Source of the DNA: Macrostomum lignano
Taxonomy: Eukaryota
Length of the DNA stretch: 64,000 bases
Reading direction: 5' to 3'
Assembly: GCA_002269645.1 (NCBI GenBank)
Contig: NIVC01000649.1
Coordinates: 23,703-87,702, forward strand
A model generated the notes under the pieces. That model had not been told where the DNA came from and ran no database searches. It worked only from the letters and a program-made list of their open reading frames with translations. The translations under genes were made by a program, and so were the position numbers. Positions 15,961 through 54,300 of the stretch are shown one piece after another. Position 1 is the stretch's first letter, and each line of letters starts with the position of its first letter.

Positions 15961-16027
15961 CACTTCAGTCTCCGCTCTCTCCATCTCTTATTCTCCCCCT
16001 TCTACAGGCACTCAGCCAGTCAGCCAG

Positions 16028-28500: not shown

Positions 28501-31500
28501 CAAGTGCCTCATGTCTAACACAACTGCCTCATGTCTAACACAAGTGCCTCATGTCTAACAGAGTGCCTCATGTCTAACAGAGTGCCTCATGTCTAACACA
28601 AGTGCCTCATGTCTAACACAACTGCCTCATGTCTAACACAAGTGCCTCATGTCTAACAGAGTGCCTCATGTCTAACAGAGTGCCTCATGTCTAACAGAGT
28701 GCCTCATGTCTAACAGAGTGCCTCATGTCTAACAGAGTGCCTCATGTCTAACAGAGTGCCTCATGTCTAATAGAGTGCCTCATGTCTAATACAAGTGCCT
28801 CATGTCTAACACAAGTGCCTCATTTCTAACACAAGTGCCTCATGTCTAATAGAGTGCCTCATGTCTAACACAAGTGCCTCATGTCTAACACAACTGCCTC
28901 ATGTCTAACACAACTGCCTCATGTCTAACACAACTGCCTCATGTCTAACACAACTGCCTCATGTCTAACACAACTGCCTCATGTCTAACACAAGTGCCTT
29001 ATGTCTAACAGAGTTTCTGTTAATGTCTATTATGTCTAACAGAGTGATTCATGTCTAACAGAGTGCCTCATGTCTAACACAAGTGCCTCATGTTTAACAC
29101 AAGTGCCTCATGTCTAACACAAGTGCCTCATGTCTAACACAAGTGCCTCATGTCTAACACATGTGCCTTATGTCTAACACAAGTGCCTCATGTCTAACAC
29201 AAGTGTCTCATGTCTAACACAAGTGCCTCATGTCTAACACAAGTGTCTCATGTCTAACACAAGTGCCTCATGTCTAACACAAGTACCTCATGTCTAACAC
29301 AAGTGCTTTATGTCTAAAACAAGTGCTTACGAGTATGCTTAACACAAGTGCCTCATGTCTAACACAAGTGCCTCATGTCTAACACAAGTGCCTCATGTCT
29401 AACACAAGTGCCTCATGTCTAACACAAGTGCCTCATGTCTAACTTTTAAGCTATTCTTCTTTGGACTGGCCCGAGGTCCATGGACAGAAGATTTCTACCA
29501 GTGCGTCTCGTTGGAAATGCAGCCCACTGGTACAGATCACCTGACAGCTCACATGAACAAGCTGGTGCTGGCCTACATGCTGTTTAACATTGCCAGTCTG
29601 TTTCTTGGCCCACTGTGCTGCTTGAGCACAGCTTACGGACTTATTATTAGCAGGATCTCAGCGAAATCTCGCGAACTGGGCGGTGAGTAAACAGCTATGG
29701 AAATATTGATCGATTGTTAATGCATTAATTAATGGCATTTGTACTTCTACTCCTGCTCATTCAGAGATACAGAGACTGAGAACGAGTTCGAATATAAGGC
29801 AGAGGAGCAGATATGAGAGAGGCAGAGATGAGAGAGGCGGAGATGAGAGAGGCAGAGTTGAGAGAGGCAGAGATTAGAGAGACAGAGATGAGAGAGGCAG
29901 TGATGAGAGAGGCAGTGATGAGAGAGGCAGTGATGAGAGAGGCAGTGATGAGAGGGGCAGTGATGAGAGGGGCAGAGATGACAGAGGCAGAGATGAGAGG
30001 GGCAGAGATGAGAGAGGCAGAGATGAGAGGGGCAGAGATGACAGAGGCAGAGATGAGAGGGGCAGAGATGAGAGAGGCAGAGATGAGAGAGGCAGAGACG
30101 GGAGAGGCAGGGATGAGAGAGGCAGAGACGAGAGGGGCAGAGATGAGAGAGGCAGAGATGAGAGGGGCAGAGATGAGAGGGGCAGAGATGAGAGAGGCAG
30201 AGATGAGAGGGGCAGAGATGAGGGTTGCAGAGACGGGAGAAGCGGAGATGAGAGGGACAGAGATGGGAGAGGCAGAGACGAGAGGGGCAGGGATGAGAGG
30301 CAGAGACGAGAGAGGCAGAGACGAGAGGGGCAGTGATGAGAGGGGCAGAGATGAGAGAGGCAGTGATGAGAGAGGCAGTGATGAGAGGGGCAGAGATGAG
30401 AGGGGCAGAGATGAGAGGGGCAGTGATGAGAGGGGCAGAGATGAGAGAGGCAGAGATGAGAGAGGCAGTGATGAGAGGGGCAGAGATGAGAGGGGCAGAG
30501 ATGAGAGGGGCAGAGATGAGAGGGGCAGAGATGAGAGAGGCAGAGATGAGAGAGGCAGAGATGAGAGATGCAGAGATAAGAGAGGCAGGGATGAGAGAGG
30601 CAGGGATGAGAGAGGCAGTGATGAGAGGGGCAGAGATGAGAGAGGCAGAGATGAGAGATGCAGAGATGAGAGAGGCAGGGATGAGAGAGGCAGTGATGAG
30701 AGGGGCAGAGATGAGAGAGGCAGAGATGAGAGATGCAGAGATGAGAGAGGCAGAGATGAGAGGGGCAGTGATGAGAGAGGCAGAGATGAGAGAGGCAGAG
30801 ATGAGAGAGGCAGGGATGAGAGAGGCAGTGATGAGAGGGGCAGAGATGAGAGGGGCAGAGATGAGAGGGGCAGAGATGAGAGGGGCAGAGATGAGAGAGG
30901 CAGAGATGAGAGAGGCAGTGATGAGAGATGCAGAGATGAGAGAGGCAGGGATGAGAGAGGCAGAGATGAGAGAGGCAGGGATGAGAGAGGCAGTGATGAG
31001 AGGGGCAGAGATGAGAGAGGCAGAGATGAGAGATGCAGAGATGAGAGAGGCAGAGATGAGAGAGGCAGGGATGAGAGAGGCAGTGATGAGAGGGGCAGAG
31101 ATGAGAGAGGCAGAGATGAGAGATGCAGAGATGAGAGAGGCAGGGATGAGAGAGGCAGTGATGAGAGGGGCAGAGATGAGAGAGGCAGAGATGAGAGATG
31201 CAGAGATGAGAGAGGCAGGGATGAGAGAGGCAGTGATGAGAGGGGCAGAGATGAGAGAGGCAGAGATGAGAGATGCAGAGATGAGAGAGGCAGAGATGAG
31301 AGGGGCAGTGATGAGAGAGGCAGAGATGAGAGAGGCAGAGATGAGAGAGGCAGGGATGAGAGAGGCAGTGATGAGAGGGGCAGAGATGAGAGGGGCAGAG
31401 ATGAGAGGGGCAGAGATGAGAGGGGCAGAGATGAGAGAGGCGGAGATGAGAGAGGCAGTGATGAGAGATGCAGAGATGAGAGAGGCAGGGATGAGAGAGG

Positions 31501-34500
31501 CAGAGATGAGAGAGGCAGGGATGAGAGAGGCAGTGATGAGAGGGGCAGAGATGAGAGAGGCAGAGATGAGAGATGCAGAGATGAGAGAGGCAGAGATGAG
31601 AGAGGCAGGGATGAGAGAGGCAGTGATGAGAGGGGCAGAGATGAGAGAGGCAGAGATGAGAGATGCAGAGATGAGAGAGGCAGAGATGAGAGAGGCAGGG
31701 ATGAGAGAGGCAGGGATGAGAGAGGCAGAGATGAGAGGGGCAGAGATGAGAGATGCAGAGATGAGAGGGGCAGAGATGAGAGAGGCAGAGATGAGAGAGG
31801 CAGAGACGGGAGAGGCAGGGATGAGAGAGGCAGAGATGAGAGGGGCAGAGATGAGAGGGGCAGAGATGAGAGAGGCAGAGATGAGAGGGGCAGAGATGAG
31901 GGTTGCAGAGACGGGAGAAGCGGAGATGAGAGGGACAGAGATGGGAGAGGCAGAGACGAGAGGGGCAGGGATGAGAGGCAGAGACGAGAGAGGCAGAGAC
32001 GAGAGGGGCAGTGATGAGAGGGGCAGAGATGAGAGAGGCAGTGATGAGAGAGGCAGTGATGAGAGGGGCAGAGATGAGAGGGGCAGAGATGAGAGGGGCA
32101 GAGATGAGAGGGGCAGAGATGAGAGAGGCAGAGATGAGAGAGGCAGTGATGAGAGGGGCAGAGATGAGAGGGGCAGAGATGAGAGAGGCAGAGATGAGAG
32201 GGGCAGAGACGAGAGAGGCAGAGATAAGAGAGGCAGAGATAAGAAAGGCAGAGATAAGAGAGGCAGTGATGAGAGAGGCAGATATGAGAGAGGCAGAGAT
32301 GAGAGAGGCAGAGATGAGAGAGGCAGAGATGAGAGAGGCAGAGATGAGAGAGGCAGAGATGAGAGAGGCAGAGATAAGAGAGGCAGAGATAAGAGAGGCA
32401 GAGACGAGAGAGGCAGAGATGAGAGGGGCAGAGACGAGAGAGGCAGATGTGATATTTATGCAAGTCACGAGGATGGTTGCGAAAATGTCTAGGTCAGACG
32501 GAATCGTGGATATAGAATTCACCCCTAACAAGAGAATCTAGTAATCTTTAAATTTGCAGTTTCAACCGCTCTTCACCAAAATTAATCTTATAAGCTCACT
32601 TCCGCTCGCATTGAAACTATGGACTTGGTTGCCTGTGTGCAATTCGATTCTGGCCAATCCTTTCATTAAGTGGATGGATTCTGCTATGGGAATTGAATTA
32701 TTGTGACTCTGGAATTGCCTATTACATATAGGTTATAACCTCTATATGACTTTAGATTGTACAACATCAAGGCTTTCTGTGCACTTTTATTGAAAGCTAG
32801 TTTATATTGACTCTTAACTATAATTACTAGCCTATCGCTGAGTAACACACTCCAGTATAACACCCTCCTGTGTAACATCCACCGGTGTAACACCCTCCTG
32901 TGTAACATCCACCGGTGTAACACCCTCCTGTGTAACATCCACCGGTGTAACACCCTCCTGTGTAACATCCACCGGTGTAACACCCTCCTGTGTAACACCC
33001 TCCTGTGTAACAACCTCCTGTGTAACACCCTCCTGTGTAACACCCTCCTGTGTAACACCGTCCTGTGTAACACCCCCTCCTGTGTCTAACAGGATTGTGT
33101 TGTCTTCCAATATTCCAACAGGCAGTCCAGATGCAAATTGCACCCAGGTTACCAAATGCAAATCTCCTTTTTTGCTACAATAGCATGCTGCATTCAGCAA
33201 ATTCGTGATAGAATTTACGGAAACAATGGATTGTTTGAATTTCAATTATTCAAAGGTTATTTCCAAGCTGTTTTTTCCTCATTTCATAGGCAATACCGGG
33301 TATTCGTTTGGTGTTTATTGTTAAAGCATTTTTTACTCCAAATTAAAAATTTAATCTTCATAGTGCAACTCAGTCAGCATTAGGGAGAGTTTAGCCAGTC
33401 CTTTTAGACTGACCGATCTCCAACACTAGAATCTCACCCTGAGAGTCTTTGTGAGACTAATTCTAATTGCTATCCCATACCACAGAATCTCACCCTGAGA
33501 GTCTTTGTGAGATCGACTCTAATTGCTATCTGAGACCCTAGAATCTCACCCAGAGAGTCTTTTCTCAGACCATAGAATCTCACCTTGAGAGTCTTTGTGA
33601 GACCGACTCTAATTGCTATCCTATACCATAGAATCTCACCTTGAGAGTCTTTGTGAGACTAACTCTAATTGCTATCCCATACCACAGAGTCTCACCCTGA
33701 GAGTCTTTGTGAGATCGACTCTAATTGCTATCTGAGACCCTATAATCTCACCCAGAGAGTCTTTTCTCAGACCATAGAATCTCACCTTGAGAGTCTTTGT
33801 GAGACCGACTCTAATTGCTATCCCATACCATAGAATCTCACCTTGAGAGTCTTTGTGAGAATAACTTCAATTGCTATCTGAGATCCTATCTAATTGCTAT
33901 CTTTTCTTCTACGTCACTTCAGCCACGGATGCTGAAAGTCTTAACAGCGATCAACAGCAGCAACAGCAGCAGCAGCCGCTGCAGCCCCAACCCCAATCCA
34001 GCCCGCCGACACTCTGCACCGACTTCTCAAATAGCCATCATCATTCAAGACAGCAGCAGCAGCGGTCTCAACTTCAGTCCCAGTCGCCACCGAGCTACGA
34101 GATGCAATTAAACCAAGCCGGCAACTTCATCGCCAGTTATCGTCAGGCATTTTTATTTCGCGTCAAATTGCGCAGCTTTCGAATGTTCTCCGTCATCATT
34201 TTGACATTCCTACTGCTTTGGCTGCCCTACTGGGGACTGTACATATTTGCGTGCGCTAACCGGCTTAGCGGAGGTCGGTACAACGACGCGGTGGAACTGA
34301 TTTCAAACGGCGTGTTCTTTTTCGGCATGTCTACCAGCGCTGTGAATCCGGTAATCTACGGGGCCTATCAGAGCCGCTGGCCGACACCTTTGTCAGCCTG
34401 TTTTGACCGCTGCTGCTGCTGCTGCAAGAGTCTTGAGCAACACGAAGAGATCAACGATCTGGTAGCAGTTGGTTATCGCCAGCAGCCGGTTAATTTGGTG

Positions 34501-37348: not shown

Positions 37349-40300
37349 CTAAGCATGGGCCTCAATTTCCCTGGCCACACTGTCCCTTCGAAGTGAATCG
37401 CGTCGATGTCGCAGACTCAGCGCCAAGCCGATGCTGATGTAGTAAAAGAACTCAAGCAGCTCGCAGATTGTCAGAACAGATATTCCGCTCCATAGGCCTA
37501 GAGCTCCTGAAAAAAGAAAGTTTATACAATAGGTGTACATGCATTTATTAAACTGCGCAAACCTTCACAAAGTGGAGGGGGGCACTGCCCTTCACAAATC
37601 CAATGAGGGACCCATATCTAGTGGAAGTTGAGGTTGTCAAAGACCCCCAGGAAAGAATGAAAGTCCCTTGTCGAGGATCCCCATTCACTGCAGTGGCAGC
37701 CACAGCCATAAACTCCACTGGACCATAGAAAATAAAGCAAGCCAATCAATATTGATAAAAGGGATTTCTCATAGCCAGAGTTGATGGGTTCGGGCTTCTT
37801 AAGCTTTTTTGATCGGAAACTTTTCCGTCCTCAGAGTCCAGAAATGAATCACTGAGCACTCTAGCTAGCCTTGCATTCCTGTCAGATGGTAGGTCAATAA
37901 TATGGCTAAAAGAGAGGAGAGCGAGAGACTAGTAGGGAGAATTTGAAAGGGGTAGAAAACAACAAATCCTAGGATTTATGCTAATCCGCCATCACAAGCT
38001 GAATAGGCTTTACGAAGCAGCACTTTCGAAATCAGTTTTTTGACTAGAATTGCAGCTTCTGCACGTACCTGCCAACTAGTGTCTTAGTATACCTATAGCT
38101 GTCCATCTCCGATGTATAAAGCTGGACGCTGCGAGGACTAGATCGTATTGATCATGCAGCAGGGACAGAGTGGACTTTTTGTGGGGGTTCTTGCGCTGTC
38201 TGAATACATGATCAAAAAACTAAATTCTCAGAAAGTATTCGGGATTTCCAATACCTGTTTGATCGATAGACTGATGGGCTGGAAAACCTCGATCAGTAAA
38301 GTGGCCACTCATCTTGTCCAGCATTGCGATAAGAGTTGCACTTGAAAACTTAAATGATCGAAATTTGACTTTCTCTTTAATTTAAAGTTATTTGCTTTGA
38401 ACTGAATCGGAGCAATAGGAATTGAAGTTCTTCCACAAAAATAGCACATTTAAACGAGAGGTGAGAAGGGCCGATTTGTTATACTCAGTGTGGAATTTTC
38501 TTATTGGACGAGCTCAGGATGACTAGCTCGACTTTCAAGACCTCGCAAAATCCTTTGCGCCTGCATGGCGACCTCTCATACATGTACCCCAGGGAGGGGG
38601 GTCGCCATCATTAACACGAAAAATCACAATTTTGAAAAGCGCTTTCTATCATAAACCCGAAACAGCATCACTTCGAAAACCAAAATAGTGTTGGACGTTG
38701 CTAGAACTTTCGAAGTTGTGATATTTCGGGTTTATGATAACTCGGGTTTATTATATTTCAGGTTAAGTAGTTAAAGTATTAAGTATGAGTAGTTGAAGAC
38801 AAACAGAAGACAAACTATCTATCGAAATGCTATACTTTCTGGAGCGAGAAATGATAGCTATATACGATAATAAATCGAAAAATGTGAAAAATTGTGACGC
38901 CCTAAAACAGGTGAGCATGAATCAAAGTTCAACATTTAGGAGTCATACTCGTGTTTATTTACTACGTTTAGTAGCACACAGTTTATTTTTTCAGTAGTAT
39001 TGATCGAAATAGGCAGTTATAAATGTAGCAATTGAGTAAGATTCAAGTAAGATAATGAATTATTTTTCTTATAAATTGCCATAAAAATAGTAAGAATAAA
39101 CAATAGAAGTATAGTTTTGATAAATTGCCATTAATTCAAACAGTCACTTTTACTAGGACACAATCGTTCTCTCATTCGTAGTTTAATTAACTTTGAATAT
39201 TCGCAGTTAGACTAGGAATTTAACTAGGAATAAGCTTCGAATTTCCTAAGAGGGTATGCTCAATTCAGAAAGGCCTTCAACTCAACGCAAATGTAAAACA
39301 GAAAGAAACACTAAAATGGCGTCGCAGTCACTTGGTGAAGCCCGATAGATCTCAAATTCGGAATCCAGCCAAGATGAACGGCTGGTATAAAAAAGTCAGA
39401 CACGTTTCTGCCCCGACAAACAAATCTGAGCTCGCCAGCTTTTGGGACTGGTCAACTGCTTTAGGAGACTGATTTCGAACTTGGCTCAAAAGACTGCTCC
39501 TCTTAATTAACTGCAAAAATCTAACACCAACTTTGACTGGACCGATGAGTGCTCTCGAGCTTTCGATAATCTCAAAGCTGAAGTCCCAATAGTGCAATAT
39601 ATAGTGCAAGCCCTATAGCCTATCAAAAGAGTTAACTCTAAGAAAGGATGCCTCAAAGAGCTCAATCGCCGCGTAGTGACATAGGAGAGGTATCCCAAAA
39701 TATTTGTTTCGAGGACACTGTCAGCCGCCAAATCAAATTTCTCAAAAATCAAACTTCCTTCATGGCCGTTAGGCACGATTTTCAGCCACTGACTCGTCTC
39801 TTCTGGCTGTGACATCTCTACAGCTTTGCACACATCGTCGAGAATTGGGCGCTGGGCTATGCGTCTCATGCACTTTGACTCTTGAACATCGAGTATGTGC
39901 AAGAAGCTGCGATATTCCACACGCTGACGCTCCACATCGGCTCCGCTTCGACAACTATTTCGCAGACGACAAGGAAACGTTTGATACCATCAACGCCGAG
40001 GCATTCGAATCACTGGTGATCGAGGCCAAAAGAATTTTGACAAAAATGGACACAGAGACCCGTTCACCCAGAAGATACTCATGAGAATACGCCATGGAGA
40101 CTGTCAGGGTTGCTCGCAAGCGGAGTCAAGTTTCAAAGCCATTTTCGAAAAGCTAGCGCTGGACAACAGACTTTTTACATGCAGAGGAGGCTTTTCATCC
40201 CTCCAGCTTCGCCGGCCTGCCTCTCAATAAAGAAAGGCCACTTCGACTCAACACGAAGTCTTAACGCAGAAAAGCAATCATCAATAAAGAAAATCCTAAA

Positions 40301-43300
40301 TTAACAATCGAGCCTACTATTAGTAAGAGAGAAGGAGATGAGAACTAGTGTGCAATTAAAAAATTAAAAAAGTTCTTCCTCATCCAGTGACTGAGCGAAT
40401 GGGGTGGGTTAGGTGCAATTCTCGTGGCAGTGGCTGTTGCCGCGGTGTGTAAGGTTTTTAGACTTGATTGGCTTTAGTAATTCAAAAACATACAGTCAAA
40501 AAACGCAGTTACCTCCTATATCGGCCAGAAGATTTTTCGCGGGGTAGGCCTCCTCTTCCGAAATTTCCTGACCATACTGTGACGTTGCCAGTTTAAGGTG
40601 GTCCCGAAAAGGGCCGTTGGACTGCTGTTTCTCTATAGTTTCAACCCTTCAGTTTCACCGTTTCAACTAAACTTTTCCATTTGTTTATTGCGACGTTTAC
40701 TTGTAGTAGTGCCCAACGATTTTGTGGCAATTTCTAATTCACTGTATATTTTGCTATCCTCTCTCGCGACCGTATAAAACTGGCACGATCGATAATTTTA
40801 AGTTCTCTCGCCAGCCAATGAAAATCACTCGTGCTTCGCGCTACCCCCCTCTGCGCTCCTTTATTAAACCCCCGCCTGGCGGCGGGCACTCCTCACTCCC
40901 GTCCTTATCTGTGCTTCTCTCTTCCTCCCGGCCTGTCCTTAGCCTTGTGTGTGTTTTCCTTCTCTCTGTCTGGCTGCCTCGAGCCTCCTTACCTCACGCC
41001 ACGGCTGACGCCAACTTCGCCACTGCTCATCTGCCTGCCTACTACGTCTCACTGCCTTCACTGTACTCATTGCCATTGATCATCACGTTACGTCGCCATT
41101 ACATCACTCGTCTGTCGCTTGAACTGACTATCCAATTTATCTTCAAAGAAACCATTGTTGCAGCCGCCAGTGCCCAGAAAGCCATAGTTTGTTATTTGCC
41201 AGTAACAACCAAACTTACTATTTATATTGATAATAAAAACGACTACGGCAGTTTCCTGCCCTTATTGCCAAGTGCTCCGCTACACCATCCACTTCGCCTA
41301 AGTTGACTTCAACTTATTTTGGGACTAAAACGGCCCTTTTAAGGGTCACAGCCAACATCAAATAACGTGACCATACGACGTCAATCCTTTAACCGTCAGT
41401 TGAGCCAGTCGGTCTCGAAGAAATTTTAGCTCGTTTTCAAAATTAATTCTATCGTGCAAGTTGCTCTCGGTCAGATTGCTTTCCAACATGACCAGAGAGC
41501 GCCAGTAAGTGCTGTAGATGCTGCTTATTCCTCTAAGACGACTGTACTCTGTTCCTAAGCCAAAATTGTGCGCCAGCTTCTTTAGAATCTCCATCGACTT
41601 GGCGCCACTTAGATCCGGCCAAGCGTAGGAGATAAGCCGCATGTCGTAGTCGGTTTCCTCGCACGGCGACAAGGCTTTCTTAGCTGCCTCGAACTGGTAC
41701 TGCAGCATCTTCGATAACTGCTCTCTGTAGCATGATTCCCGTAGCCTTGACACAGTCTCCGTGTCATTGGTGTCAAAGCAGAAGGTATAGTTCGAGAAAA
41801 ACTCAACTTCAATTGGCAGAAATTATGGCAAGCAGTTACATGCCTTAGCGAAATGTTGCACAGTAAATTTGTTTGTGTAGTCTTCTTTGCTTGGGATATT
41901 GTAGCGCCAATCCATTGCTTGCAGGGGTCTACAAAGTCAAATGTAAAAGATTTCATATCGTAGGATTAAACTGTTGGACAGGTTAAAATGTTGAGTACAG
42001 TATGCCACGCACCTCAACGCGTTTTGTTTTTCAAGTTGTGCTCGCAGAACAGCAATTTTTTGCCACCATTCCGAGGCTGCCTTAACGAAGTGTAAACGTA
42101 TATTTTCCCTGAAATAGAAAGTCACGATAATGCAATTTAGGATCATACTTATGTCCAAGTAATATTTCCAGGCTTACTCATTAGAACTCGTGGTTTTAGC
42201 CTGCTTCCAAGACGGCATTCTGTAAGTTACAGGCTCCGTGTTCTCAACACAGGGCCTCGATGCAGTGGATAGCTTCTTAATTTTTTTAAACTCAACTGAA
42301 TATCCATACTTTGAGCTGTGGCAACATCGACACCCTTTGACGGCCATGGGTAGCTGCCTTCTGGGACTATGACTGCCTGCAAAATTCAGGAGATGTTTGT
42401 GAAAAACTAATAAAGTGGTAATTAATTAAAAGCTTCTACCAACAATGAGAAATAAGATTGAACACGCGGGGTTGAGAACTAGGAACTAAGACATGATAAT
42501 CAGGACATGAAAACTTGAGAGAAGAACACAACGCAACGGCATGGTACAAACAGTTTCAAAACATTCCCTGTTTGTAGGACTTACTTTAAAAGCGATTTTT
42601 CTTTCATCATTGCTCACGGACCTGTGCACGATGCGGTTCAGCTTGTCCAATTCTGGTATTGTTCCACCATTCGAGTCTGTCGAGTCCGTGAAATATTTGA
42701 TTGACAGCTGACTGTCCGCCAACTGCGAGCTGGACATGTTCTGGGTGAATCGCTGCTTCATAAAGTGGTGACACATGCCCAGCTGCGGGTGAGACACGCT
42801 CAGGAAGTCGTCTTTAGTGCAGCTCTGGCCACCGAAGGAGCACTCGGCCAGGGTGAAGCTCAGGTCGCTGCTGAACTGCAGGGCCAGCAGATGGCTGCCG
42901 ATGCCATCCCGGATCGCAGCAGTCACGGTGGGAACTTTAGTGTCTGCAAGACATCAATAAGAGCTAGAAAACTGTAGCACTTATTGGCTGTGACATTTCT
43001 TCTACTTATCTTAAAGCTAAATACATGTAGTATATTGTATTGTGGCCTAAGCAGAAGGGGAGGGGCGAGGGGGGGGGACGTTCCTATTAAAAAAACAAAC
43101 TAAAGAACTGATGGGTTCCTTTTATAAGACCGAAATTTCACAACACTGAAAACTCCATATGCAAGACCCTTTACAAGCCCGAAAATTCATATGACGGAAA
43201 GTTCACATCGTAGAAAAATTAATACAACAAGGACCATGCAAATATTTGGCGTTGTCAAATTCGGTCTTGTACGAGCTAGAGGGTCTCGTATATACTCGTA

Positions 43301-46300
43301 GAGTTTTCGGCGTTGTGAAATCACAGGCCTAAGATGAGAGGGACAGGCCCAAGGACAGGGGCGGGCGCCAATCGAGAGACAGACATTCAGACAGAAGTGA
43401 GACAGATGCAGGCAGAAACTGGCACAATATTTTTTAGGACTATTTGACTGGGAAATGCTAAACTCACAGCAGGCGGTAATGTCGCACTTGGTCAATGCCA
43501 AATTTACCAAATTGGATTTTCCGAAGGTGTCAGAAACGCAGGAGGGAGCCTCGTCGTCTGATTTCAAATCTGGGTTCCGACTAAAATGTTCGATATGAGA
43601 ACTTAGGGCTGCAAGTGTTTTGGCACTTAAATAATTACTGAATTGGCCGCACTATTAAGCATATAGCTGCAATTAATGCTTACTAATAAACCCTGTCTGA
43701 AAAGCCAAACTCCCGGATAATTTGAGCAGGCCTGCAAAAATTGTCAGCACCTTCAAGCCGGTCATAGTCGGGCGTTTCCAAATGAATCCGCATTTTATAG
43801 TCATAGTTGGCTGAAATGTGACAGTTTAAAATATAAAGACATTTTGTTTAAATATTAAAAGCGCTGGAGGACAACGGGATTATATAAATAAATAAAATAC
43901 TTTTACTCAACAACTACACAGTTTTTTTTATTTCGTTATTGTGTTATTGTGTTTTGTTGTTACTGCTACTAGAGAAGAGTTTCTCATTCAGTCACAAATT
44001 GTTTTTGTCTGATGTTTCTAAACTTGTACGAGTAGTAGCGAAACTTGCTTCCCCGTATAATCGTACGAATATCTACATAAAGTATGCGTGTAACTTATAA
44101 AGTATAGCTACTTATAATCTAAAATTCTAATAAATGATTTTTTCTCGTCAATTAGTTTTTTTATTGTCCAAGACAACTATTAGACCATACTGCTAACTTA
44201 GCCCAGGTTTTTGTTGTTAAAGCGCTTTAAATATTATCATAAATTTTCCCGAAAAACTTTCTTTCCTCGAAAAATCTCGTTAATTTTTTTTAATTGAATA
44301 TAATACTTACGAATAAATACTTCACCGTTCTACTAGTAACCACCACCGTATTGGTTTTACACGTAAAACTCGTTTTATTATTTTACGTCTACATAGTACA
44401 TGCACTTTACCAACTGGATCTATTTTTTGCTTTCTCTGCTTGTTTCGTTCCACGATCTGGTTCCAGGCCAAGCAGGGCTCTCCCGAGGCCGCCACATTCC
44501 TGTAGCCGGTGTAGACGGCCTGCTGTCGCTGCCGAGCTGCTTCGTCAGCTGTACCAGAAATGCAGTCATAGCCGGAATTCATGCCTATAAAATGATGTTG
44601 TAGTACTCCTAAAGTTACTGAAATTTTATTAAGTTTATTAAGGAATCGCTGTCTGCATCAGAGGTTAGACGCTACTCATACATGCTACACTGTCAAAACC
44701 GGAGATTGCGACGTTTGCCAGCCGATGTTAATAGTCGACGTCGTCATACAAGTCATTAAGTAGATTAAGTGCGTTGCTCGTACATTACTAGACTATACAC
44801 GCTTATGCATTCGCATGTATAAACATGTAGGTAGTCTGGAGCTTAGACTCAAGGGCCACTAGAAGTTACCGTTGTAGCAGTTGTGTTACAGCCTGAATAC
44901 AAGTACAACAGTAACTTCTAATGGTCCATGCTTAGACTTCTTCCCACGGTAATTTATTTGGAACTCGTGAATCCTGGCCGAACGCCAACCGTCGAATCGC
45001 GTGGCCTTTTATTAAGCTCCGAAAATTCCCTGTCTGCTCAAATTGTTTCAATAGCGAATGTATGGTCAGCATCTTTACGGGCGTTAAAGAAATCAAAATG
45101 AACTCTATCAATGACCACTTTCGACGAAAATTAGACGAAAAACTTAGACGAAACGGATCGCCTCCTGAAGAGTAATCTTGAAAGAAATTTAGCGCGGACC
45201 TCTTACCTAATGCCTGTGTTAAATAGTTCTATTTCTAACATCTGTACACTTATTCACGGTTAAAGCCTCTTGACTCAATGCTTTTGACCAGTTTGCAAAT
45301 TTGAACCGAGAACAGTTTGAAACTGGCCCCATCAGCAAATCAAAAGTTCAGAAGGCGTGTGCGGTGTCCTTCTACAACAGCAGCGTTCAAAATTGAAGCC
45401 TTAGAAACCTACGGCAGAGTGGGACGTTGCAGAAAGCAGCCTCAAGCCTGCCAAAATCGTCTTTGAAAAAGCAGTAGGGCCCGTTTGATAATGCCGTCAG
45501 GACGCTTGAGTTGCTGATTCGTAGCGGCTTTGAGTCTGAAAATGAAGCACGACTTGATTAAAAAGCTAGCTCGCATTGTTTGCGCGCATTTAAAATTGCA
45601 GCAGTTCTGTTCCCTCACTTACCGGTATCTCTTATACAAAAAACATTGACATCGCAATCGCATTTCCTTGCGACGCTGTTAATCGATAATTTGTCGCAGA
45701 ACCCCTGCTGTGTATTGTTCCAAGTGCCGCAGTGACACTCGCCGTCCCGCAGGGCAATGTGCGTGAAGTCGAGCTCATCGCAGCAGTCGGCGCACAGTTC
45801 TGTAGTTATTCGGCCACGTACGAGACATGTCTTGTTGAAGTTCTCTTCAACAGTGCTGGAGTTTTTTGCAAAACAACCTACTCGTTGTAGCAGCGATCCT
45901 GATATTGTGTTCAAAAGTTAATAGAAGAAATCAAAGTTTAGATTTATTAACAAATCATCAAGGCTAAATGCATTTCTAATGGTAAATTATCAGCTGATTT
46001 AGTATTAACTACAGGTAAGAAAAATATTTGGCAACAGTTCTCTGCAAGAGGATGAGTAAACGATGACTGCTGGCATGCACCTATAAAAGGCTCGAAGCCA
46101 TGTGGCTATTAGTAAATCCCGTATCTCCTTCCTCTACATCCACAGTCGCCTGAATGCACAAACGATAATAGAGGGAAAGACGGAAAGTGCTAAAGTGCAT
46201 CTGCGTTTCGGTGGTTGCCACACCAGACCATAATAGGCTTAGCTCGAACAGCTATAAACAATTATAAATTTTCCTAGTATATAGCAACACAGCTCGAGCA

Positions 46301-47859
46301 ATTTTAACTGCGGTTGAGCTTGGAATACTTATTTTTATCGTAACTACGAATCGACTAGACTCGACGTATTTATTGCCCGACAAGGTTTCTTCTGGAGTCA
46401 GCGAGAGCAATTACAGTAGAAGATAAATTGTTAAAGTATCCGCAAAATTCACAGAGTCAACATAATTTTTTATCACTCACTGCTGCCAATCGGAAAAAAC
46501 TCAGACAGCGGCAGTCGGACCGGAGCTCGGCACCGGGACTCGCTGTCAGAGTAATTAAGCATCAGCAGCCGGTCGCCCAGGCTTGCTGCGCCTCGAGCTT
46601 TCAGCATCCGAGCAGCTTCGCTCCATCGAATGCACGGCTTGGTCGTCGTGTACGGCTTTAGCGACCGGTCAGTGCGTTGTAGATCGATTCGCGCTCGATC
46701 GTATGTCACCGCGAAACTTCTATTGCCAGCGTACTCCTCTCCAGACAAGCTGGTTCGACAGTCTAAGAGTGCATCTTCTGCAATGCAATCAACGTTGAAT
46801 CCTTTCAGCGATCATATTTTAACTGTCATAACCAACTCTCCACGAATCTGTGCGCAATAAAAATTATTTGTATCTTCTTCACGAAAGTTAGGTGGCGGGT
46901 GGTGCGATTCGTCTGATATCAAATCTGATCCATATCAAATCCATGAGATTGTACTTGTCCGACAATTGGACAGTCAAGGCTGCTTGCTGTTCATCCAGTC
47001 TGCGTACAGTATTAGCGCTTGCATGTTCTCAACAGTCAGCGGAATGTGCAGAGATGCCTCAGCTTTGGTTGCGGAATGTGGAAAATTCGCCAAAGGCGTT
47101 GCGCCAGATGGTGCCTGCAACTCTCCTGAGAATATTTTAGGCCGAACATCAATATACATGTACGGTAACAAAGCATAGCACCACTAGCAAAATTTAGCAA
47201 CCATATGTAATCTGATGCTATTATTCTAAAAGTTAATACAAAGAAAACACTTATGACTTAAGTATCAAAATATGAAAAAGAGCACTATATGACTCACCAT
47301 CTTGGGGAAGTTGAAACTTTGCTATGAAAGCGGCCTCCGTGGCCTTGAGAACGTAAAGTATTGCCCTAGCCGGCTTGCTCAACGCATATAAATCGTCATT
47401 TGTTCCATTAAATCGAAAGAAATTAGCTTTGAATTCAGGTTTCACATGGTCTCTAGCGTTGAAACTAATGTAAACGGATTCAATTTCTTTGCTGGCCCTG
47501 CTCATAGTGACTGGCTGGGCGGGGCAGATGTACACATCCGGGAACTGGAATCCCAGACTGGACATGGTCATGGTGGTGAGAACAGGCGCCTGAGCGAACC
47601 TGTCAAAGAGAGTGTACAGGTGATAGGCAAATCCTGAGTAGGTTCCCAGAAGGAACCCGATCCAAATCAGCTTGCCGATTGCACTGGACTGGCTGGCGAA
47701 TCTTCCCAAGCCGTGCGCTGTCGTGTATCCGAGAAACTCGATAGCAGACCTGCGCAGTTGGTTCGCTTTTGGCGTCCTATCATGCTGCTGCTGCTGCTGC
47801 AGCTGTTCCATACTCGGCTCTTGAATTCCGTGCTTGGTAGCAAGAATAGCAGTGGACAT
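37349..47859 (-). CDS. DEG/ENaC (ASIC/FaNaC-like) channel subunit with kringle and WSC modules in the finger region; apparent lesions present
   Basis: Exons 47859-47298, [46777-46481, 45898-45623, 45535-45413, 44584-44411, 43608-43468], 42943-42585, 42376-42178, 42108-42013, 41928-41377, 40577-40513, 37506-37349. Motifs TTAHG, TM1, FPDVYIC, ECSFGGQSC..DF..HPQLGMC, AFKAVIVPEGSYP, CNCLP, PCEETDY....YAWP, AYPAKNLLADIGG|ALGLWSGISVLTICE. Reconstructed CDS is 3003 nt (~1000 aa) after adding one A at 42281-42287, reading through TAA at 41825-41823 and removing the 40578-41367 insertion plus one repeat copy. Confidence 0.88.
39340..40300 (+). mobile_element. Degenerate Ty3/gypsy pol remnant (RT connection, RNase H, start of integrase)
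   Basis: Broken frames give PTNKSELASF..GLVNCFRRLISNLAQKTAPL..FDWTDECSRAFDNLK, RIGRWAMRLMHFD, HADAPHRL, RRLFIPP..KGH; multiple stops and frameshifts; lies in the last ENaC intron. Confidence 0.8.
40578..41367. mobile_element. 790-bp insertion flanked by a 9-bp direct repeat TGACCATAC; LTR-like internal features
   Basis: Repeat copies at 40569-40577 and 41368-41376. TGTGAC (40578)...GTCACA (41350) inverted hexamer, CCAAT 40815, AATAAA 41232. Removal restores an ungapped ENaC sequence. Confidence 0.75.
43468..43608 (-). CDS. ENaC module exon: C-terminal half of kringle 2
   Basis: 141 nt, cag|...|gtgagt, phase 1-1: EHFSRNPD..APSC..KCDITAC (cf. NYCRNPD..PWC..YCDIP.C). The expected third Cys is Ser (AGT). 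Confidence 0.8.
44411..44584 (-). CDS. ENaC module exon: N-terminal half of kringle 2
   Basis: 174 nt, tag|...|gtaaag, phase 1-1: YDC..VYTGYRNVAASGEPCLAWN. Confidence 0.8.
44850..44929. mobile_element. 80-bp micro-MITE with 24-bp imperfect TIRs and a 9-bp flanking direct repeat GCTTAGACT
   Basis: Arms 44853-44876 and 44904-44927 (21/24 complementary); direct repeats at 44841-44849 and 44930-44938. Confidence 0.65.
45413..45535 (-). CDS. ENaC module exon: C-terminal half of kringle 1 (below the ORF-track length cutoff)
   Basis: 123 nt, ttttcag|...|gtaggt, phase 1-1: SKPLRISNSSVLTALSNGPYCFFKDDFGRLEAAFCNVPLC (cf. GPWCY...YC.VP.C). Confidence 0.82.
45623..45898 (-). CDS. ENaC module exon: WSC domain
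   Basis: 276 nt, cag|...|gtaagt, phase 1-1: VGCF..ITTELCADCC..FTHIALRDGECHCG..FC..KCDC. Confidence 0.8.
46481..46777 (-). CDS. ENaC module exon: N-terminal part of kringle 1
   Basis: 297 nt, ttgcag|...|gtgagt, phase 1-1: LDCRTSLSGEEYAGNRS..KPCIRW..RCRAP. Confidence 0.78.
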
Positions 47860-49355
47860 ATGCAGCTTTCTTTGTCCGGTATTTTAGCTGTTTGCGCAAC
47901 TGCTTATATGATCGGCTTGCATGTATATCTGAGAGTTCAGGGTTCAATGCTACGAGTGTGTGGCTGCAAGGGACATGATGGATATAGGATTTCCCTATCC
48001 CCTTCTGCACATGCGTCTGAATGTACGAACGAAAGGAGAGAGACTGACGGGAGTGCATCTGCGTTCCGATGCTTGCCTACCAACCCATAATGGGATTAGC
48101 TCGCACAATTTCGACACTTATAAATTTTCCTAGCGCATACCAACGCAGCTCGAATGAATTTAATCGCACAGTCGAGCTTGTAATATTCCTAACTCCCACC
48201 TACTTGACGCATTCATAATTGCTGTGGAACAACCGCAAATTGCACGAATGATTTATGAGCAAAATAAAGCAAAATATTCACATTATGATGGACGAGCTAT
48301 CCAGATAACTACCGCAACTCGGGAGTAGCATAATTCTGGACTACTACAGTACAAGGAATGCTGTACAGTACAAGAGGCGGACGACATCACCGAAGGTGGG
48401 CGCAACCCTTCCGCGAATATTTTTCAGTACTTTAGTTTTCACGTTCCCTACACACACTTATCTGCATTAGAAGCTTAAAATTATAATGAAAACGTTGACC
48501 TTTAAATTCACGCGTACTTGCGCTCGTATTTCACAATATTGTGCGTTCACTGCAAGTTTCAAATGATCAGCAGTCAGGACGTGTAAACTGAATGTAGCTG
48601 CCATTGCTACAGTACTTCGACTTGGACATACGTTGTGGACACGACGAAAACGTTCCAGTGTTTGCTGAAGCGCTTTTAAACAGTTAAGGGTAGTGACTAC
48701 TGACGAGTAGCAAAAGAAGATTTCTTGAGCAATAATTGTAAATATGAAATTTTCTTCAGAAAGCAAAGAATGCTGTTCTTCTTTTAGGTGAGAAGGATTA
48801 GTCAGAATCTCTAAATCTCAGCATCTCAGAATGGTAAAGCTGAAATCAATACCTATAACAATTCCTCAGATTCCAAGGCTCGTTCAGAATGTTGAGCTAA
48901 ACAGAAGAGCTAAAGAATGGGGGGGGACTGGGGGCTCATCTGTTTTTCTCCCTATTTCGCTAGTCATCTCTCATGAGTTCGCAAATTCTTCGTTCGCTCC
49001 TCTGGAAGAAATCCTGATTCCATAGCTGGTCCCGACTGATTTCTAGGCGGTGCGATGCAGTGATGCGATGTCAAAGTTTAATTTTTCATATGCCGCCGCC
49101 GATTGTACTTTAAGTGCATGTCCTCAAAGAGGGCCTCAAAAAGCAGCTACATGTGTAAATAATCATTTTTATCTGACACAAATATACAAAATAATTCCTC
49201 GTAAAAATTAACATGTCATTGATTCGCCCAGCCAATCAGTACTTCTCTGGGACTAGTGTCTTTGATAAAATCCCTTTGATGCGACCCCGGGCTAATGCGA
49301 TCCAATCAGATTAACAAAAACGAATTTTTTAAAGAAAAGTACCCAAAAATTCGAG

Positions 49356-49486: not shown

Positions 49487-49996
49487 ATGCTAAAGGCAGC
49501 TGGAATTCTCGCTATTGTCGCAATCGCAGCCGTGACAGGCAGCCAAACTACTGCTAAACGGAGGGTTTTCGGAGAAGCGGGTATGTTCAGCTTATACAAT
49601 GTCCATTGTTACCGAATATATCGCGTTTTAAAACAAAAAAAACTATTTTTGTTGCAACCAGGAATGAATTTATCGTAAGCTTCTCGTTCATTTAGCGCCT
49701 ATGATGGCCAACCCACAAGGCGGTAAAAGGTCAGCGGCCCTAAAAGCCGCACACTTGATGACTAAGCAACTAATAAATAACCAATCGTTATCTCAACCGC
49801 AACAGACCTGCAGAGGGTCAAGCTGAACTCCCTGTGCACTCGACTCTGCCGAAACGTCTTTAATTCGAATGACCCGTTCTGCGTGGGCGATTTCCTCATT
49901 CACAATGGGCATCCTGACTGCGTCTGTTCCAAGCACTGCCGCCACTCGGTGCTGCACTGGCTGCACCTGGATGGTCATCAGGAACCGGGCCGCTGA
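49487..49996 (+). CDS. Small secreted six-cysteine peptide precursor, 94 aa, 2 exons
   Basis: Exons 49487-49580 (g|gtatgt) and 49806-49996 (aacag|ac), phase 1. MLKAAGILAIVAIAAVTG (signal-like) SQTTAKRR VFGEADLQRVKLNSLCTRLCRNVFNSNDPFCVGDFLIHNGHPDCVCSKHCRHSVLHWLHLDGHQEPGR. Confidence 0.75.
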
Positions 49997-50400
49997 TCGG
50001 CTTTGATTAACTAACAAATCCAAATGTACTTTAACGTCTAAGATCTTTGCGTTGCTAACTTTTAATCGGCTATTGTTAAACTTTCTACAGCCGACTAAAT
50101 AGAAAGTGAAATCGAGGGATTGAATTTAAGCAACAACAGCATGCTGTCAGTTGTTTAAAGCCTCATTAATAACTAAACTTCGGTCTTTATCGTCACTTTG
50201 CGGTGTGGCATGCAGTATTTGTATGCAACAAAACATTCACAAACAAGAAGAACATTAGTGCAAATCACAAAAGCAGAAAAAAGTATTAATCTCGAAATAA
50301 AAAGAGACAATAGCCAACCAAATATCGTCCAGTGAATGAGAAAAAGATCCATGCATAATAACAGCCAGTCTTTGGCTCTTCATTTATAAACAAAAACACT

Positions 50401-50640: not shown

Positions 50641-52359
50641 CAAATTAGGACAGGTGCAATTCAAAGCAAGTTTTGAACGTCCTGTTCAAGGTTTGGAGAA
50701 TTGCTATATTTTCAGCAGTTAGTCCAATCAGATATAGTGATAGATAGCTTATCACGCTTGTTATCAGACGCTTTATTTAAACCAGTCCACCGATATTGTC
50801 CTCTTTGTTGCTGACAGATCCTTGTTAACCTTTAAATTTAACTCTGACGTGGATTTACACGACGGGGTTCGCACAGTTTTTTTAGCGCATAGGGTCTTTC
50901 GATCTGAGGGCTGAATCAAGCAACCCATTGTTGAGCGAATTCATGATAGGCTAGGTGGTGACAGTGGGTTGACGCAGCTGACTTATGGGGAGGGGGTTGT
51001 GCGTAAGTGGCTAACAGTAATAGGGAGAGTGGTAGCCAATCAGAATTGGACAAGCCTAGGGCCGGGGCTGCAAACATCCTGTTAGACTGGGTTGATGGGG
51101 GTTTAAGCAACTTGATCATCAGTGCAGGTGTACACACGGTAAAGGCCGGCTGCACATTACCCCTAATAGCACCGCAGATCAGAGATTGCTCAAATCAATG
51201 TACAGTTTGTTTAGAACCGTTTTAGAAGGTGTACTGTTTGCTTTCACTAGTTTAGGAATTTAATATAGGACCAATTTGAATTTTTAATGCAGTGAACTCT
51301 TGCTTCTCTAATAATAATTGAAAGTTCCAGTGGTCTATCAGCAATCTGAACATCTAAGGGTATTAGAGACACGTTTAGCAGCACCACGTTCCCAAGCAAC
51401 CCATGAATTCGATTCCGAGTCATCAGCGTGAGTGCCCAGAAGACGCCACTTGCAAATTTACGAGCTAGACAGGACGTTGCTTTGATTCGAGTAAGTCTTT
51501 CTTCAAATCAGTTGCTGCGCATCGAGTGCCTTTGGGCCTCGCCGAGGGCAATTTCAGGTGACGGGTAATTTAGCTAACTTAATGATCATTTTTTTTTAAT
51601 TATCAACGGATCTGAGACTGATTCGTTTTTCTCGAATTTTGATATAATTGCTCTCATCTGATTGAGGAGTCTTCACTGATTCTGTGTAATTAATCTTTGT
51701 AGAAAGCTCAGCACTTGACAAATATGACTAGTTTCTATTTATTAGTTTAGGAGCAGATTGTAAAACGATTCTACTGATAGTAGTCAGGGTACGCTAATTT
51801 TTATTCTGCCTGTAGTTGAGGCTGAATTCGATTGACCAGGGACTTCTAGTAATAGCAGTAGTGGACTGGAAACTAGACTGAAGCACTTGCCACTTCCCTC
51901 TATCAAAGTTCGTCTCCTTCCAGCTCCCTTCTCTCTATCCGGTTCTATCAAATTCGTTTCCTTCCAGCTCCCTTCTCTCTATCCGGTTCTATCAAATTCG
52001 TTTCCTTTCAGCTCCCTTCTCTCTCATCTCTCCTCTCTCTTCTCATCAGCTCTCCTCTCTCCTCTCCCCTCTCATCAGCTCTCTATGAGAGGTGATAAGA
52101 TATAAAGATATATTATCTCTTTCTCATATTTTCTCCTATCTGTCATCTTTATAAATTTTTTAACTGTCAGTGGAGCCTCAGCCAGTGAGAAACTATTTGA
52201 AGCTATCAATAAACTTCTTCACATCTAGCAGGAAACTCAGAGTTTAAATTTGACAAACAAACAATTGGTTTATAATTAAAAAACAGGTTATGTTCAGAAA
52301 TGATAAGAAAAGTGGAATGCAATTGGTGCTAAAATCTCAGCGCTATATTTCTGGCGTCC

Positions 52360-54300
52360 TTGGTGCCGGCGCCCATTGGTGCTGGCGCCCCTTGGTGCTG
52401 GCGCCCCTTGGTGCTGGCGCCCCTTGGTGCTGGCGCCCCTTGGTGCTGGCGCCCCTTGGTGCTGGCGCCCCTTGGTGCTGGCGCCCCTTGGTGCTGGCGC
52501 CCCTTGGTGCTGGCGCCCCTTGGTGCTGGCGCCCCTTGGTGCTGGCGCCCCTTGGTGCTGGCGCCCCTTGGTGCTGGCGCCCCTTGGTGCTGGCGCCCCT
52601 TGGTGCTGGCGCCCCTTGGTGCTGGCGCCCCTTGGTGCTGGCGCCCCTTGGTGCTGGCGCCCCTTGGTGCTGGCGCCCCTTGGTGCTGGCGCCCCTTGGT
52701 GCTGGCGCCCCTTGGTGCTGGCGCCCCTTGGTGCTGGCGCCCCTTGGTGCTGGCGCCCCTTGGTGCTGGCGCCCCTTGGTGCTGGCGCCCCTTGGTGCTG
52801 GCGCCCCTTGGTGCTGGCGCCCCTTGGTGCTGGCGCCCCTTGGTGCTGGCGCCCCTTGGTGCTGGCGCCCCTTGGTGCTGGCGCCCCTTGGTGCTGGCGC
52901 CCCTTGGTGCTGGCGCCCCTTGGTGCTGGCGCCCCTTGGTGCTGGCGCCCCTTGGTGCTGGCGCCCCTTGGTGCTGGCGCCCCTTGGTGCTGGCGCCCCT
53001 TGGTGCTGGCGCCCCTTGGTGCTAAAGCCCCTTGGTGCTAAAGCCCCTTGGTGCTAAAGCCCCTTGGTGCTAAAGCCCCTTGGTGCTGGCGCCCCTTGGT
53101 GCTAAAGCCCCTTGGTGCTAAAGCCCCTTGGTGCTAAAGCCCCTTGGTGCTAAAGCCCCTTGGTGCTAAAGCCCCTTGGTGCTAAAGCCCCTTGGTGCTA
53201 AAGCCCCTTGGTGCTAAAGCCCCTTGGTGCTAAAGCCCCTTGGTGCTGGCGCCCCTTGGTGCTGGCGCCCCTTGGTGCTAAAGCCCCTTGGTGCTAAAGC
53301 CCCTTGGTGCTAAAGCCCCTTGGTGCTAAAGCCCCTTGGTGCTAAAGCCCCTTGGTGCTAAAGCCCCTTGGTGCTAAAGCCCCTTGGTGCTAAAGCCCCT
53401 TGGTGCTAAAGCCCCTTGGTGCTGGCGCCCCTTGGTGCTGGCGCCCCTTGGTGCTGGCGCCCCTTGGTGCTAAAGCCCCTTGGTGCTAAAGCCCCTTGGT
53501 GCTAAAGCCCCTTGGTGCTAAAGCCCCTTGGTGCTAAAGCCCCTTGGTGCTAAAGCCCCTTGGTGCTGGCGCCCCTTGGTGCTAAAGCCCCTTGGTGCTA
53601 AAGCCCCTTGGTGCTAAAGCCCCTTGGTGCTAAAGCCCCTTGGTGCTAAAGCCCCTTGGTGCTAAAGCCCCTTGGTGCTGGCGCCCCTTGGTGCTAAAGC
53701 CCCTTGGTGCTAAAGCCCCTTGGTGCTGGCGCCCCTTGGTGCTGGCGCCCCTTGGTGCTGGCGCCCCTTGGTGCTGGCGCCCCTTGGTGCTAAAGCCCCT
53801 TGGTGCTAAAGCCCCTTGGTGCTAAAGCCCCTTGGTGCTAAAGCCCCTTGGTGCTAAAGCCCCTTGGTGCTAAAGCCCCTTGGTGCTAAAGCCCCTTGGT
53901 GCTAAAGCCCCTTGGTGCTAAAGCCCCTTGGTGCTAAAGCCCCTTGGTGCTAAAGCCCTTGGTGCTAAAGCCCCTTGGTGCTAAAGCCCCTTGGTGCTAA
54001 AGCCCCTTGGTGCTAAAGCCCCTTGGTGCTAAAGCCCCTTGGTGCTAAAGCCCCTTGGTGCTAAAGCCCCTTGGTGCTAAAGCCCTTTGGTGCTAAAGCC
54101 ATTTGGTGCTAAAGCCCCTTGGTGCTAAAGCCCTTTGGTGCTAAAGCCCCTTGGTGCTAAAGCCCCTTGGTGCTAAAGCCCCTTGGTGCTAAAGCCCCTT
54201 GGTGCTAAAGCCCCTTGGTGCTAAAGCCCCTTGGTGCTAAAGCCCTTTGGTGCTAAAGCCCCTTGGTGCTAAAGCCCCTTGGTGCTAAAGCCCCTTGGTG
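52360..54300. repeat. 16-bp minisatellite GCCCCTTGGTGCT(GGC/AAA), ~120 copies
   Basis: Homogeneous GGC block to ~53020, then mostly AAA units with interspersed GGC units. Confidence 0.97.

Follow-up and report, generated by a model that had tools for sequence, protein, structure and literature searches.

Channels of the DEG/ENaC family respond to stimuli as diverse as protons, peptides, proteases, and force, and much of their specificity resides in the variable finger region of the ectodomain. Nematode degenerins carry extracellular regulatory domains that are lineage-specific inserts in this region and regulate gating. The GRIP domain of ENaC is likewise lineage-specific extra sequence in the finger that regulates gating, and the α2-α3 corner of the finger is the FMRFamide pocket of FaNaC, where gating displaces it by 3-5 Å; ENaC and ASIC have regulatory sites in this corner, and matrix-tether sites have been proposed there for mechanosensitive members (PMC11026163). 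Here, we analyze a DEG/ENaC gene of the flatworm Macrostomum lignano that belongs to an M. lignano-specific subfamily bearing a cysteine-rich ectodomain block of ~370-390 residues, encoded within a phase-1 intron of the finger region. In contrast to this block of kringle-like and WSC modules, the ENaC and degenerin inserts contain no recognizable shuffled modules, and the ENaC insert works via furin or prostasin cleavage. The gene lies on the minus strand, from about 47859 to 37349, of a 64,000-nucleotide stretch (hereafter the window) of contig NIVC01000649.1 from the Mlig_3_7 assembly. The window is identical to the contig, and its numbering is used throughout.

Several known proteins resemble parts of this gene. 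The channel portion shares with FaNaC and the wider DEG/ENaC family a two-transmembrane (two-TM) topology, the HG motif, the post-TM1 strand, the C-x-F-x4-C motif, the pre-TM2 'ADIGG' sequence, and the TM2 sequence 'GLWSGIS'. It differs from FaNaC, ASIC, ENaC, and pickpocket channels in its ~370-390 extra cysteine-rich finger residues, and no alignment of the finger helices themselves is possible. Kremen1/2 (PDB 5fws) is the only well-known protein that unites kringle and WSC domains in one extracellular unit, but it presents kringle (KR), WSC, and CUB domains serially on a single-pass receptor. In the flatworm family, by contrast, the WSC domain is predicted to sit inside a kringle, a second kringle is added, and the host is an ion channel; no CUB domain was found in the family by Pfam. 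Yeast Wsc1 (7pz2) shares the eight-cysteine WSC pattern with most paralogs and is the best structural match to the modeled insert, albeit at 18% identity. The flatworm WSC domains add two conserved cysteines, reside in a channel rather than a single-pass sensor, and in the window copy lack Cys7. Canonical kringles, such as those of plasminogen, prothrombin, and HGF, have the same six-cysteine framework and the motifs Y-x-G, G-x-x-C-x-x-W, [NF/NY]-C-R, and P-x-C...C-x-[IV]-P-x-C as the flatworm domains. Their Cys1-Cys6 span is about 74-99 residues among 40 comparison kringles versus 129-141 residues in the flatworm, where the Cys3-Cys4 gap holds the WSC domain (kringle 1) or a loop of ~30 residues.

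Module exons are spliced into the channel transcript

Channel exon 1 (47298-47859, minus strand) begins with an ATG at 47859, which is also the start of GenBank model P0001 (BOX15_Mlig013355g1). By translation and Pfam, it encodes the HG motif ('YTTAHGLGRF') ahead of TM1, the post-TM1 strand 'FPDVYICP', and the first part of the finger, and it ends in phase 1 at a GT donor (47298). The next channel exon (42585-42943, minus strand, phase 1 to 0) supplies the remaining finger and the β-ball region, including the conserved 'ECSFGGQSCTKDDF...GMCHHF', and aligns with residues 172-240 of FaNaC 7yvb. Together, the two exons match Pfam ASC (PF00858) at E=2.5e-19 and 70 bits (cut-off 23.6), and the paralog P0003 matches it at E=1.6e-42. 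TM2 is encoded by the last coding exon (37349-37506, minus strand; stop codon 37351-37349), which contains 'GALGLWSGISVLTICELLE' with the G-x-S filter motif ('GLWSGISVLT') and aligns with TM2 of FaNaC, ENaC, and ASIC. A first-pass annotation made from the sequence had assigned the gene to DEG/ENaC and had placed a 4.35-kb phase-1 intron between its first two channel exons; both points are borne out, the latter by an intron of 4354 nt that separates the donor at 47298 from the exon beginning at 42943.

The insert comprises six exons on the minus strand, which total 1110 nt and encode 370 aa with all codons open. Module exons 1 to 4 are 46481-46777 (297 nt), 45623-45898 (276 nt), 45413-45535 (123 nt), and 44411-44584 (174 nt), each in phase 1-1. 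Module exon 5 (43684-43810, 127 nt) runs from phase 1 to 2 and has a 142-nt equivalent at L001, the locus of P0003, and module exon 6 (43468-43580, 113 nt) runs from phase 2 to 1. The first-pass annotation had proposed five module exons, all multiples of three, flanked by AG/GT, and in phase 1-1. Its first four stand exactly as described, being open, AG/GT-flanked, and symmetric. The fifth, a 141-nt exon at 43608-43468, is open and AG/GT-flanked, yet P0001 and all paralogs splice 43810-43684 to 43580-43468 instead, and the P0001 sequence '...DNFCRPAQIIREFGFSDRVYYRNPDL...' corresponds to these two exons. The symmetric phase therefore holds for the first four exons only, and the added length is 370 rather than 337 aa. 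A GC donor for the missing exon (CAG/GC at 43732, joined to 43580) was considered and dropped, as P0001 and the paralogs use a GT donor at 43683. A translated search (tblastn) with P0003 recovered the window module exons at E values of 3e-22 to 3e-6. Among four paralogs, 67 columns are invariant, cysteines included, and the window insert has 6 N-glycosylation sequons and 23 cysteines.

The six module exons are spliced into the channel mRNA. P0001 (726 aa), recovered with 100% query coverage, joins exon 1, the six module exons, and channel exons. The GenBank models of Mlig_3_7 derive from genome-guided RNA-seq transcript assembly (StringTie/TACO) and a mapped de novo transcriptome, with open reading frames (ORFs) called by TransDecoder and no ab initio prediction (PMC5730564); the junctions in P0001 therefore reflect spliced reads. 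The intact 13-exon gene of the paralog P0003 (1049 aa) has all six module exons at the equivalent places, and the block is entered and left in phase 1. The introns among these module exons are 76-179 nt long; one junction allows two placements, of which the one with better consensus gives back a phase 1-1 WSC exon. The six-exon insert was found to contain neither a start codon nor a stop codon nor any hydrophobic segment, in agreement with the earlier observation that the block has no start, signal peptide, or stop of its own. The same annotation had judged a nested gene unlikely, and the RNA-seq-derived P0001 and the matching layout of P0003 strengthen that judgment. Its further suggestion that isoforms with and without the modules exist is without transcript support, as the idea rests solely on predicted exon-skipping models. 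In one paralog group, the UniProt models P0005, P0006, and P0008 have the exon for the C-terminal half of kringle 1 and other module exons present, absent, or shortened, always in frame; these differences could be cassette splicing or mere prediction noise.

Kringle-like and WSC domains of the insert

Module exon 1 encodes the N-terminal part of the first kringle-like domain (Cys1, Y-x-G, Cys2-x-x-W, and 'SRCRAP' with Cys3; identified by paralog alignment and HHalign), and module exon 3 encodes its C-terminal part ('GPYCFF...AFCNVPLC', Cys4-6). The second kringle-like domain starts in module exon 4 ('DC...YTGYRN...SGEPCLAW'; HHalign and a subthreshold Pfam Kringle match), continues in module exon 5 with the conserved 'ETPD...DNFCRP' (Cys3; P0001 and paralog alignment), which contributes invariant T, D, N, C, and R residues in all paralogs, and ends in module exon 6 with 'RNPDL...PSCV...KCDITAC' (Cys4-6; P0001 and paralogs). 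Six cysteines are conserved in each domain, along with the landmarks Y-x-G, C-x-x-W, [NY/NF]-C-R, and C-x-[IV]-P-x-C. When compared by HHalign with 23 kringles of other animals, kringle 1 with its WSC portion removed scored 97.6% (E=3.3e-12, 84/84 columns) and kringle 2 scored 96.7% (E=3.4e-10). In addition, 38 kringle-repeat fragments match the insert profile at ~200-290, spanning the C-terminal half of kringle 1, the linker, and the N-terminal half of kringle 2. Pfam Kringle returned hits at E<=1 for 6/7 kringle-2 sequences (best 1.5e-4) and 2/6 kringle-1 sequences with the WSC portion removed (best 0.043), with best scores of 22.7-28.2 bits for the window kringle 2 (cut-off 34.3). The kringle modules named in the first-pass annotation thus survive as six-cysteine frameworks with HHalign scores of about 97%, but not as canonical kringles with lysine-site features, a Pfam-level score, or a fold match. 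These domains are kringle-derived, very divergent, and carry long inserts.

Module exon 2 encodes the WSC domain, as judged by HHalign against the WSC profile. In the paralogs, all eight conserved cysteines are present plus two extra. P0011 and P0007 pass the Pfam WSC cut-off (PF01822, 27.8 bits) at 39.1 and 41.1 bits, P0003, P0010, and P0005 fall just below it at 24.6-26.4 bits, and positions 104-190 of the insert profile match hundreds of WSC-repeat proteins. The WSC exon of the window itself gave no Pfam hit at E<=1. With HHalign it scored 93.4% (E=2.6e-7) against the WSC profile, the alignment covering just template columns 3-57, the N-terminal two-thirds; the C-terminal third of the domain is degenerate, with Ser at the Cys7 position and extra cysteines (11 in all). 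An AlphaFold2 model of the window insert built with 71 sequences reached a predicted local distance difference test score (pLDDT) of 78.2 and a predicted template modeling score of 0.78, with pLDDT <50 at insert residues 167-176. Foldseek returned the yeast Wsc1 sensor domain (7pz2) as the top match of this model, at probability 1.00 and a target-normalized TM-score of 0.56; the E value is a modest 0.013 because the query is multi-domain. Kremen followed, over 218-248 columns at a probability of 0.38-0.51, with a poor superposition (root-mean-square deviation 17 Å, 12-13% identity). The presence of a WSC domain, as first proposed, is well supported by the paralog Pfam scores, the Wsc1 match, and the HHalign result for the window exon.

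The WSC exon falls between Cys3 ('SRCRAP') and Cys4 ('GPYCFF') of kringle 1. Because kringle 1 without this exon aligns over the entire kringle length, the WSC domain appears to be nested within it. The predicted order is therefore kringle-1 N-half, WSC, kringle-1 C-half, and kringle 2, rather than a serial kringle-WSC-kringle arrangement.

The insert lies in the finger region

To locate the block, the family profile with the insert removed was aligned to solved structures. The closest were FaNaC (7yvb, E=9e-17; 8on7, E=9e-16), followed by ENaC and ASIC, in keeping with the assignment to DEG/ENaC. The insertion point corresponds to approximately residue 178 of Aplysia FaNaC, ~30 residues ahead of the C-x-F-x4-C motif, in the α2-α3 segment of the finger; this local alignment is weak alone but collinear with significant flanking matches. 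This agrees with the finger-region placement made initially and refines it.

An insert-bearing subfamily in M. lignano

An insert profile built from four insert sequences was searched with HMMER against 1.84 billion representative proteins and returned 1701 hits. Among the best 150 of these, every whole-insert match is from M. lignano, and among 161 retrieved proteins, those that also match the channel parts come from M. lignano only. A word-indexed protein search with the channel-only part of P0003 likewise recovered M. lignano proteins and no outside relatives. The insert is present in at least eight M. lignano lineages: Mlig013355 (the window gene), Mlig006056, A0A1I8IV52, the P0005/P0006/P0008 group, Mlig034226, Mlig007204/Mlig028168, P0013, and P0162-P0164. 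No family member without an insert was found among the retrieved M. lignano proteins; P0162-P0164, which seem to be insert-less, in fact start inside kringle 2. Insert identity between paralogs was 31-42% in one comparison and about 30-50% overall, with invariant cysteines. The six-exon layout is older than the split between these paralog lineages, of which there are at least eight.

The window locus is not alone in having this architecture, and its paralogs are already in public databases under automatic names, most often 'WSC domain-containing protein' in UniProt. In the literature on ENaC or degenerins with WSC or kringle domains and on Macrostomum ENaC, no paper describing a kringle- or WSC-bearing DEG/ENaC was found, which upholds the earlier remark that no such ectodomain had been described. 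The subfamily is an undescribed form of a known channel family, so far confined to one flatworm.

Lesions in the channel portion of the window copy

The TM1-TM2 reading frame is uninterrupted in P0003 and broken at the window locus. One break lies in a 199-nt channel exon (42178-42376, minus strand), whose paralog equivalent is 200 nt. A run of seven A residues at 42287-42281 lacks one base relative to the paralog, causing a frameshift and a stop at 42229-42227, where P0001 ends before TM2. Adding one A at 42287-42281 restores the frame 'QLSLKKIKKLSTASRPC', identical in length to the paralog's 'HLRFDKYSRLSTSSRPC'. A 96-nt exon in phase 2-2 (42013-42108, minus strand; the paralog exon is also 96 nt) separates this break from the palm/thumb exon (41367-41928, minus strand), which carries an in-frame TAA at 41825-41823 ('CNCLP-stop-FLPIE') within the conserved motif C-x-C-L-P-S-F-L-P-I. 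Ser occupies this position in four other paralogs and Gly in P0003; because of the Ser in four paralogs, a single TCA-to-TAA change explains the stop. The assembly was polished by Pilon with Illumina and RNA-seq reads (PMC5730564), so both the frameshift and the TAA are probably real. M. lignano is also a recent polyploid with much redundancy (PMC5730564).

In addition, where the paralog has one continuous exon, the window copy carries an insertion of ~790 bp (40578-41366), located between the palm/thumb exon and the pre-TM2 piece 'YGQEISEEEAYPAKNLLADIGG' (40513-40576, minus strand, ending in phase 1). The insertion, bordered by a 9-bp direct repeat (GTATGGTCA when read on the minus strand), has 21-nt subterminal inverted repeats that are 81% complementary and contains a longest open frame of 198 aa. 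It looks like a miniature inverted-repeat transposable element or DNA transposon; no second copy was found within the window or L001. Splicing could remove it in frame (CAC/GT...AG/TAT), and it is possibly a transposon-made intron whose splice sites come from the element ends and the duplication. At positions of agreement among the other three paralogs, unique departures number 15 and 26 in the window copy compared with 5-11 in P0003 or P0010, a comparison confounded by tree shape because P0003 and P0010 are sisters. The window locus probably encodes no working channel or pore. Most likely, the window copy is an expressed, recently disabled paralog, and intact paralogs like P0003 represent the working form.

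A second model of the locus, the UniProt entry P0002 (A0A1I8IQF7), adds an upstream exon at 49796-50125 (minus strand), skips module exons 5 and 6 together with several of the channel exons, and continues far in the 3' direction; it looks like a prediction threading around the lesions. At 49796-50125, GenBank has a different gene of 94 aa on the opposite strand, and Pfam found nothing in the minus-strand ORF.

Sequence surroundings

Unlike L001, the window copy has multi-kilobase introns and repeats all around it. L001 is compact, and its upstream neighbors are genes for a zf-U1 protein and ribosomal protein L22e (L001 27-614 and 1733-2119). Minisatellite arrays fill window positions 1-34000 and 52358-54300 (46 rows from Tandem Repeats Finder, periods 4-202 nt) and account for the extreme GC-skew blocks in the window's composition. 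Examples include a 15-mer of ~176 copies (29807-32447), a 21-mer of ~120 copies (13576-15987), and a 16/48-mer array (52358-54300) that translates as a long false ORF. A dispersed repeat of ~190 bp occurs with 72% identity in the intron between module exons 1 and 2 (46052-46238) and just upstream of the gene (48008-48185). Pfam found no match for the intronic and flanking ORFs at 39510-39989, 49796-50125, 48470-48817, and 44935-45228.

Discussion

We consider it likely that the window gene belongs to an M. lignano-specific DEG/ENaC subfamily in which a kringle[WSC]-kringle block is spliced into the finger, that the window copy is disabled, and that the block binds an extracellular partner. Several observations weigh against parts of this interpretation. 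Restriction to M. lignano may mirror database content; other Macrostomum species are probably missing from the searched protein sets. The pseudogene status comes from one PacBio-based assembly, and the second assembly, ML2 (the source of P0002), shares its PacBio reads. Inactivation, if any, must have been recent, because none of the 370 module codons and no splice site is damaged. For the kringle-like domains, the Pfam gathering score was never reached (best 28 bits), and the HHalign reference set was drawn from hits of the family profile and is not fully independent. A model of kringle 2 (pLDDT 74.5) retrieved no kringle among 95 Foldseek matches, all at E>1, although this is a weak test since kringles are poor in regular secondary structure and these have long inserts. 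The nesting of the WSC domain within kringle 1 is a prediction from sequence. Finally, the lysine-binding pocket of kringles comprises an acidic pair after the NYCRNPD motif together with aromatic residues. The sequence after Cys3 reads 'CRAPVRLPLSEF' in kringle 1 and 'CRPAQIIREF' in kringle 2, and a comparison by eye with this general picture of kringles revealed no canonical NPDGD-type acidic pair in either, leaving the suggestion of lysine binding without support.

Two alternatives concern the structure of the locus. The module exons could form an independent gene nested in the channel intron, or the joined model could be a fusion created by annotation or assembly. The 4.35-kb host intron offers room for such a gene, secreted proteins can contain kringle and WSC modules as well, and the joining is seen in assembled models rather than individual transcript reads. 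Yet neither a start, a stop, nor a hydrophobic segment resembling a signal occurs in the block, the frame is continuous at both of its ends, and an RNA-seq-derived model joins it to channel exons. The same arrangement recurs in at least eight paralog lineages, with introns of just 76-179 nt among the modules at L001, and the family has yielded no insert-less member, given that P0162-P0164 start inside kringle 2. On the strength of P0001, the P0003 layout, and the absence of a start codon, stop codon, and hydrophobic segment from the block, we regard a nested gene or fusion as very improbable. It is also conceivable, if rather unlikely, that the window copy is intact and functional; the frameshift, and perhaps the TAA, would then reflect errors of assembly or variation between alleles, and the 790-bp insertion would simply be spliced as an intron. 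The missing base sits in an A7 homopolymer, a typical site of long-read error, and one added A gives the exact paralog length; the downstream exons, including TM2, are otherwise open and conserved, the module exons and splice sites are all intact, and the GT...AG ends of the insertion are usable and keep the frame. Against this stand the Illumina and RNA-seq polishing of the assembly and the nature of the TAA, a substitution within a conserved motif and thus atypical of long-read error. Moreover, the independently produced model P0002 also splices around both lesions, and the C-terminal third of the WSC domain is degenerate in the window copy alone.

A third alternative accepts the subfamily and its spliced block but gives the insert no role in sensing or gating; it would instead serve folding, trafficking, clustering, or adhesion, act as a protease-removable inhibitory plug as in ENaC GRIP, or reside in proteins that do not conduct. 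This explanation is possible, although we do not favor it. The WSC domain of yeast Wsc1 mediates clustering. The finger is the most variable region of DEG/ENaC and tolerates large inserts elsewhere, the ENaC GRIP domain being an example (PMC11026163). In M. lignano itself, three channels of a clade adjacent to FaNaC yielded no currents with peptides in oocytes (PMC9234716); their gene identifiers differ from those of the insert family, to which they may or may not belong. A furin-type R-x-[KR]-R site is absent from the ectodomains of four family members, which counts against the furin-type version of the plug only. Old paralogs retain the insert at about 30-50% identity, its cysteines invariant, so the insert is under constraint, whatever the purpose of that constraint.

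Returning to the interpretation of the block as a sensor, each subunit of an intact trimer would bear a kringle[WSC]-kringle block, glycosylated and rich in disulfides, at the ectodomain's upper outer corner. Its attachment site would be the α2-α3 finger segment, which in FaNaC binds FMRFamide and moves on gating. We infer that the block most likely binds an extracellular macromolecule, whether glycan, matrix, or protein. Occupancy of the block, or a pull on it, might then be relayed through the finger and thumb to the gate. That the kringle[WSC]-kringle unit of intact members is in this way a gating sensor, with glycan, matrix, or protein binding or tension at the finger opening or modulating the pore, is a tentative and still doubtful proposal.

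In evolutionary terms, the locus presents a clean instance of exon shuffling, in which a symmetric 1-1 WSC exon occupies an internal phase-1 intron of a kringle and the whole block occupies a phase-1 intron of a channel gene. If the predicted nesting is correct, it would be a textbook case of one shuffled domain inside another. A subfamily with recognizable binding modules on the part of the finger that moves when FaNaC gates offers a concrete test system, also with regard to how mechanosensitive DEG/ENaC channels connect to the matrix. M. lignano is amenable to transgenesis, making cell-type expression and knock-down studies feasible. If the proposed mechanism is true, the subfamily would provide a natural, genetically tractable example of the long-proposed gating of DEG/ENaC channels by extracellular tethers or macromolecular ligands. 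Its main interest is as a system for testing how DEG/ENaC fingers gain new sensors.

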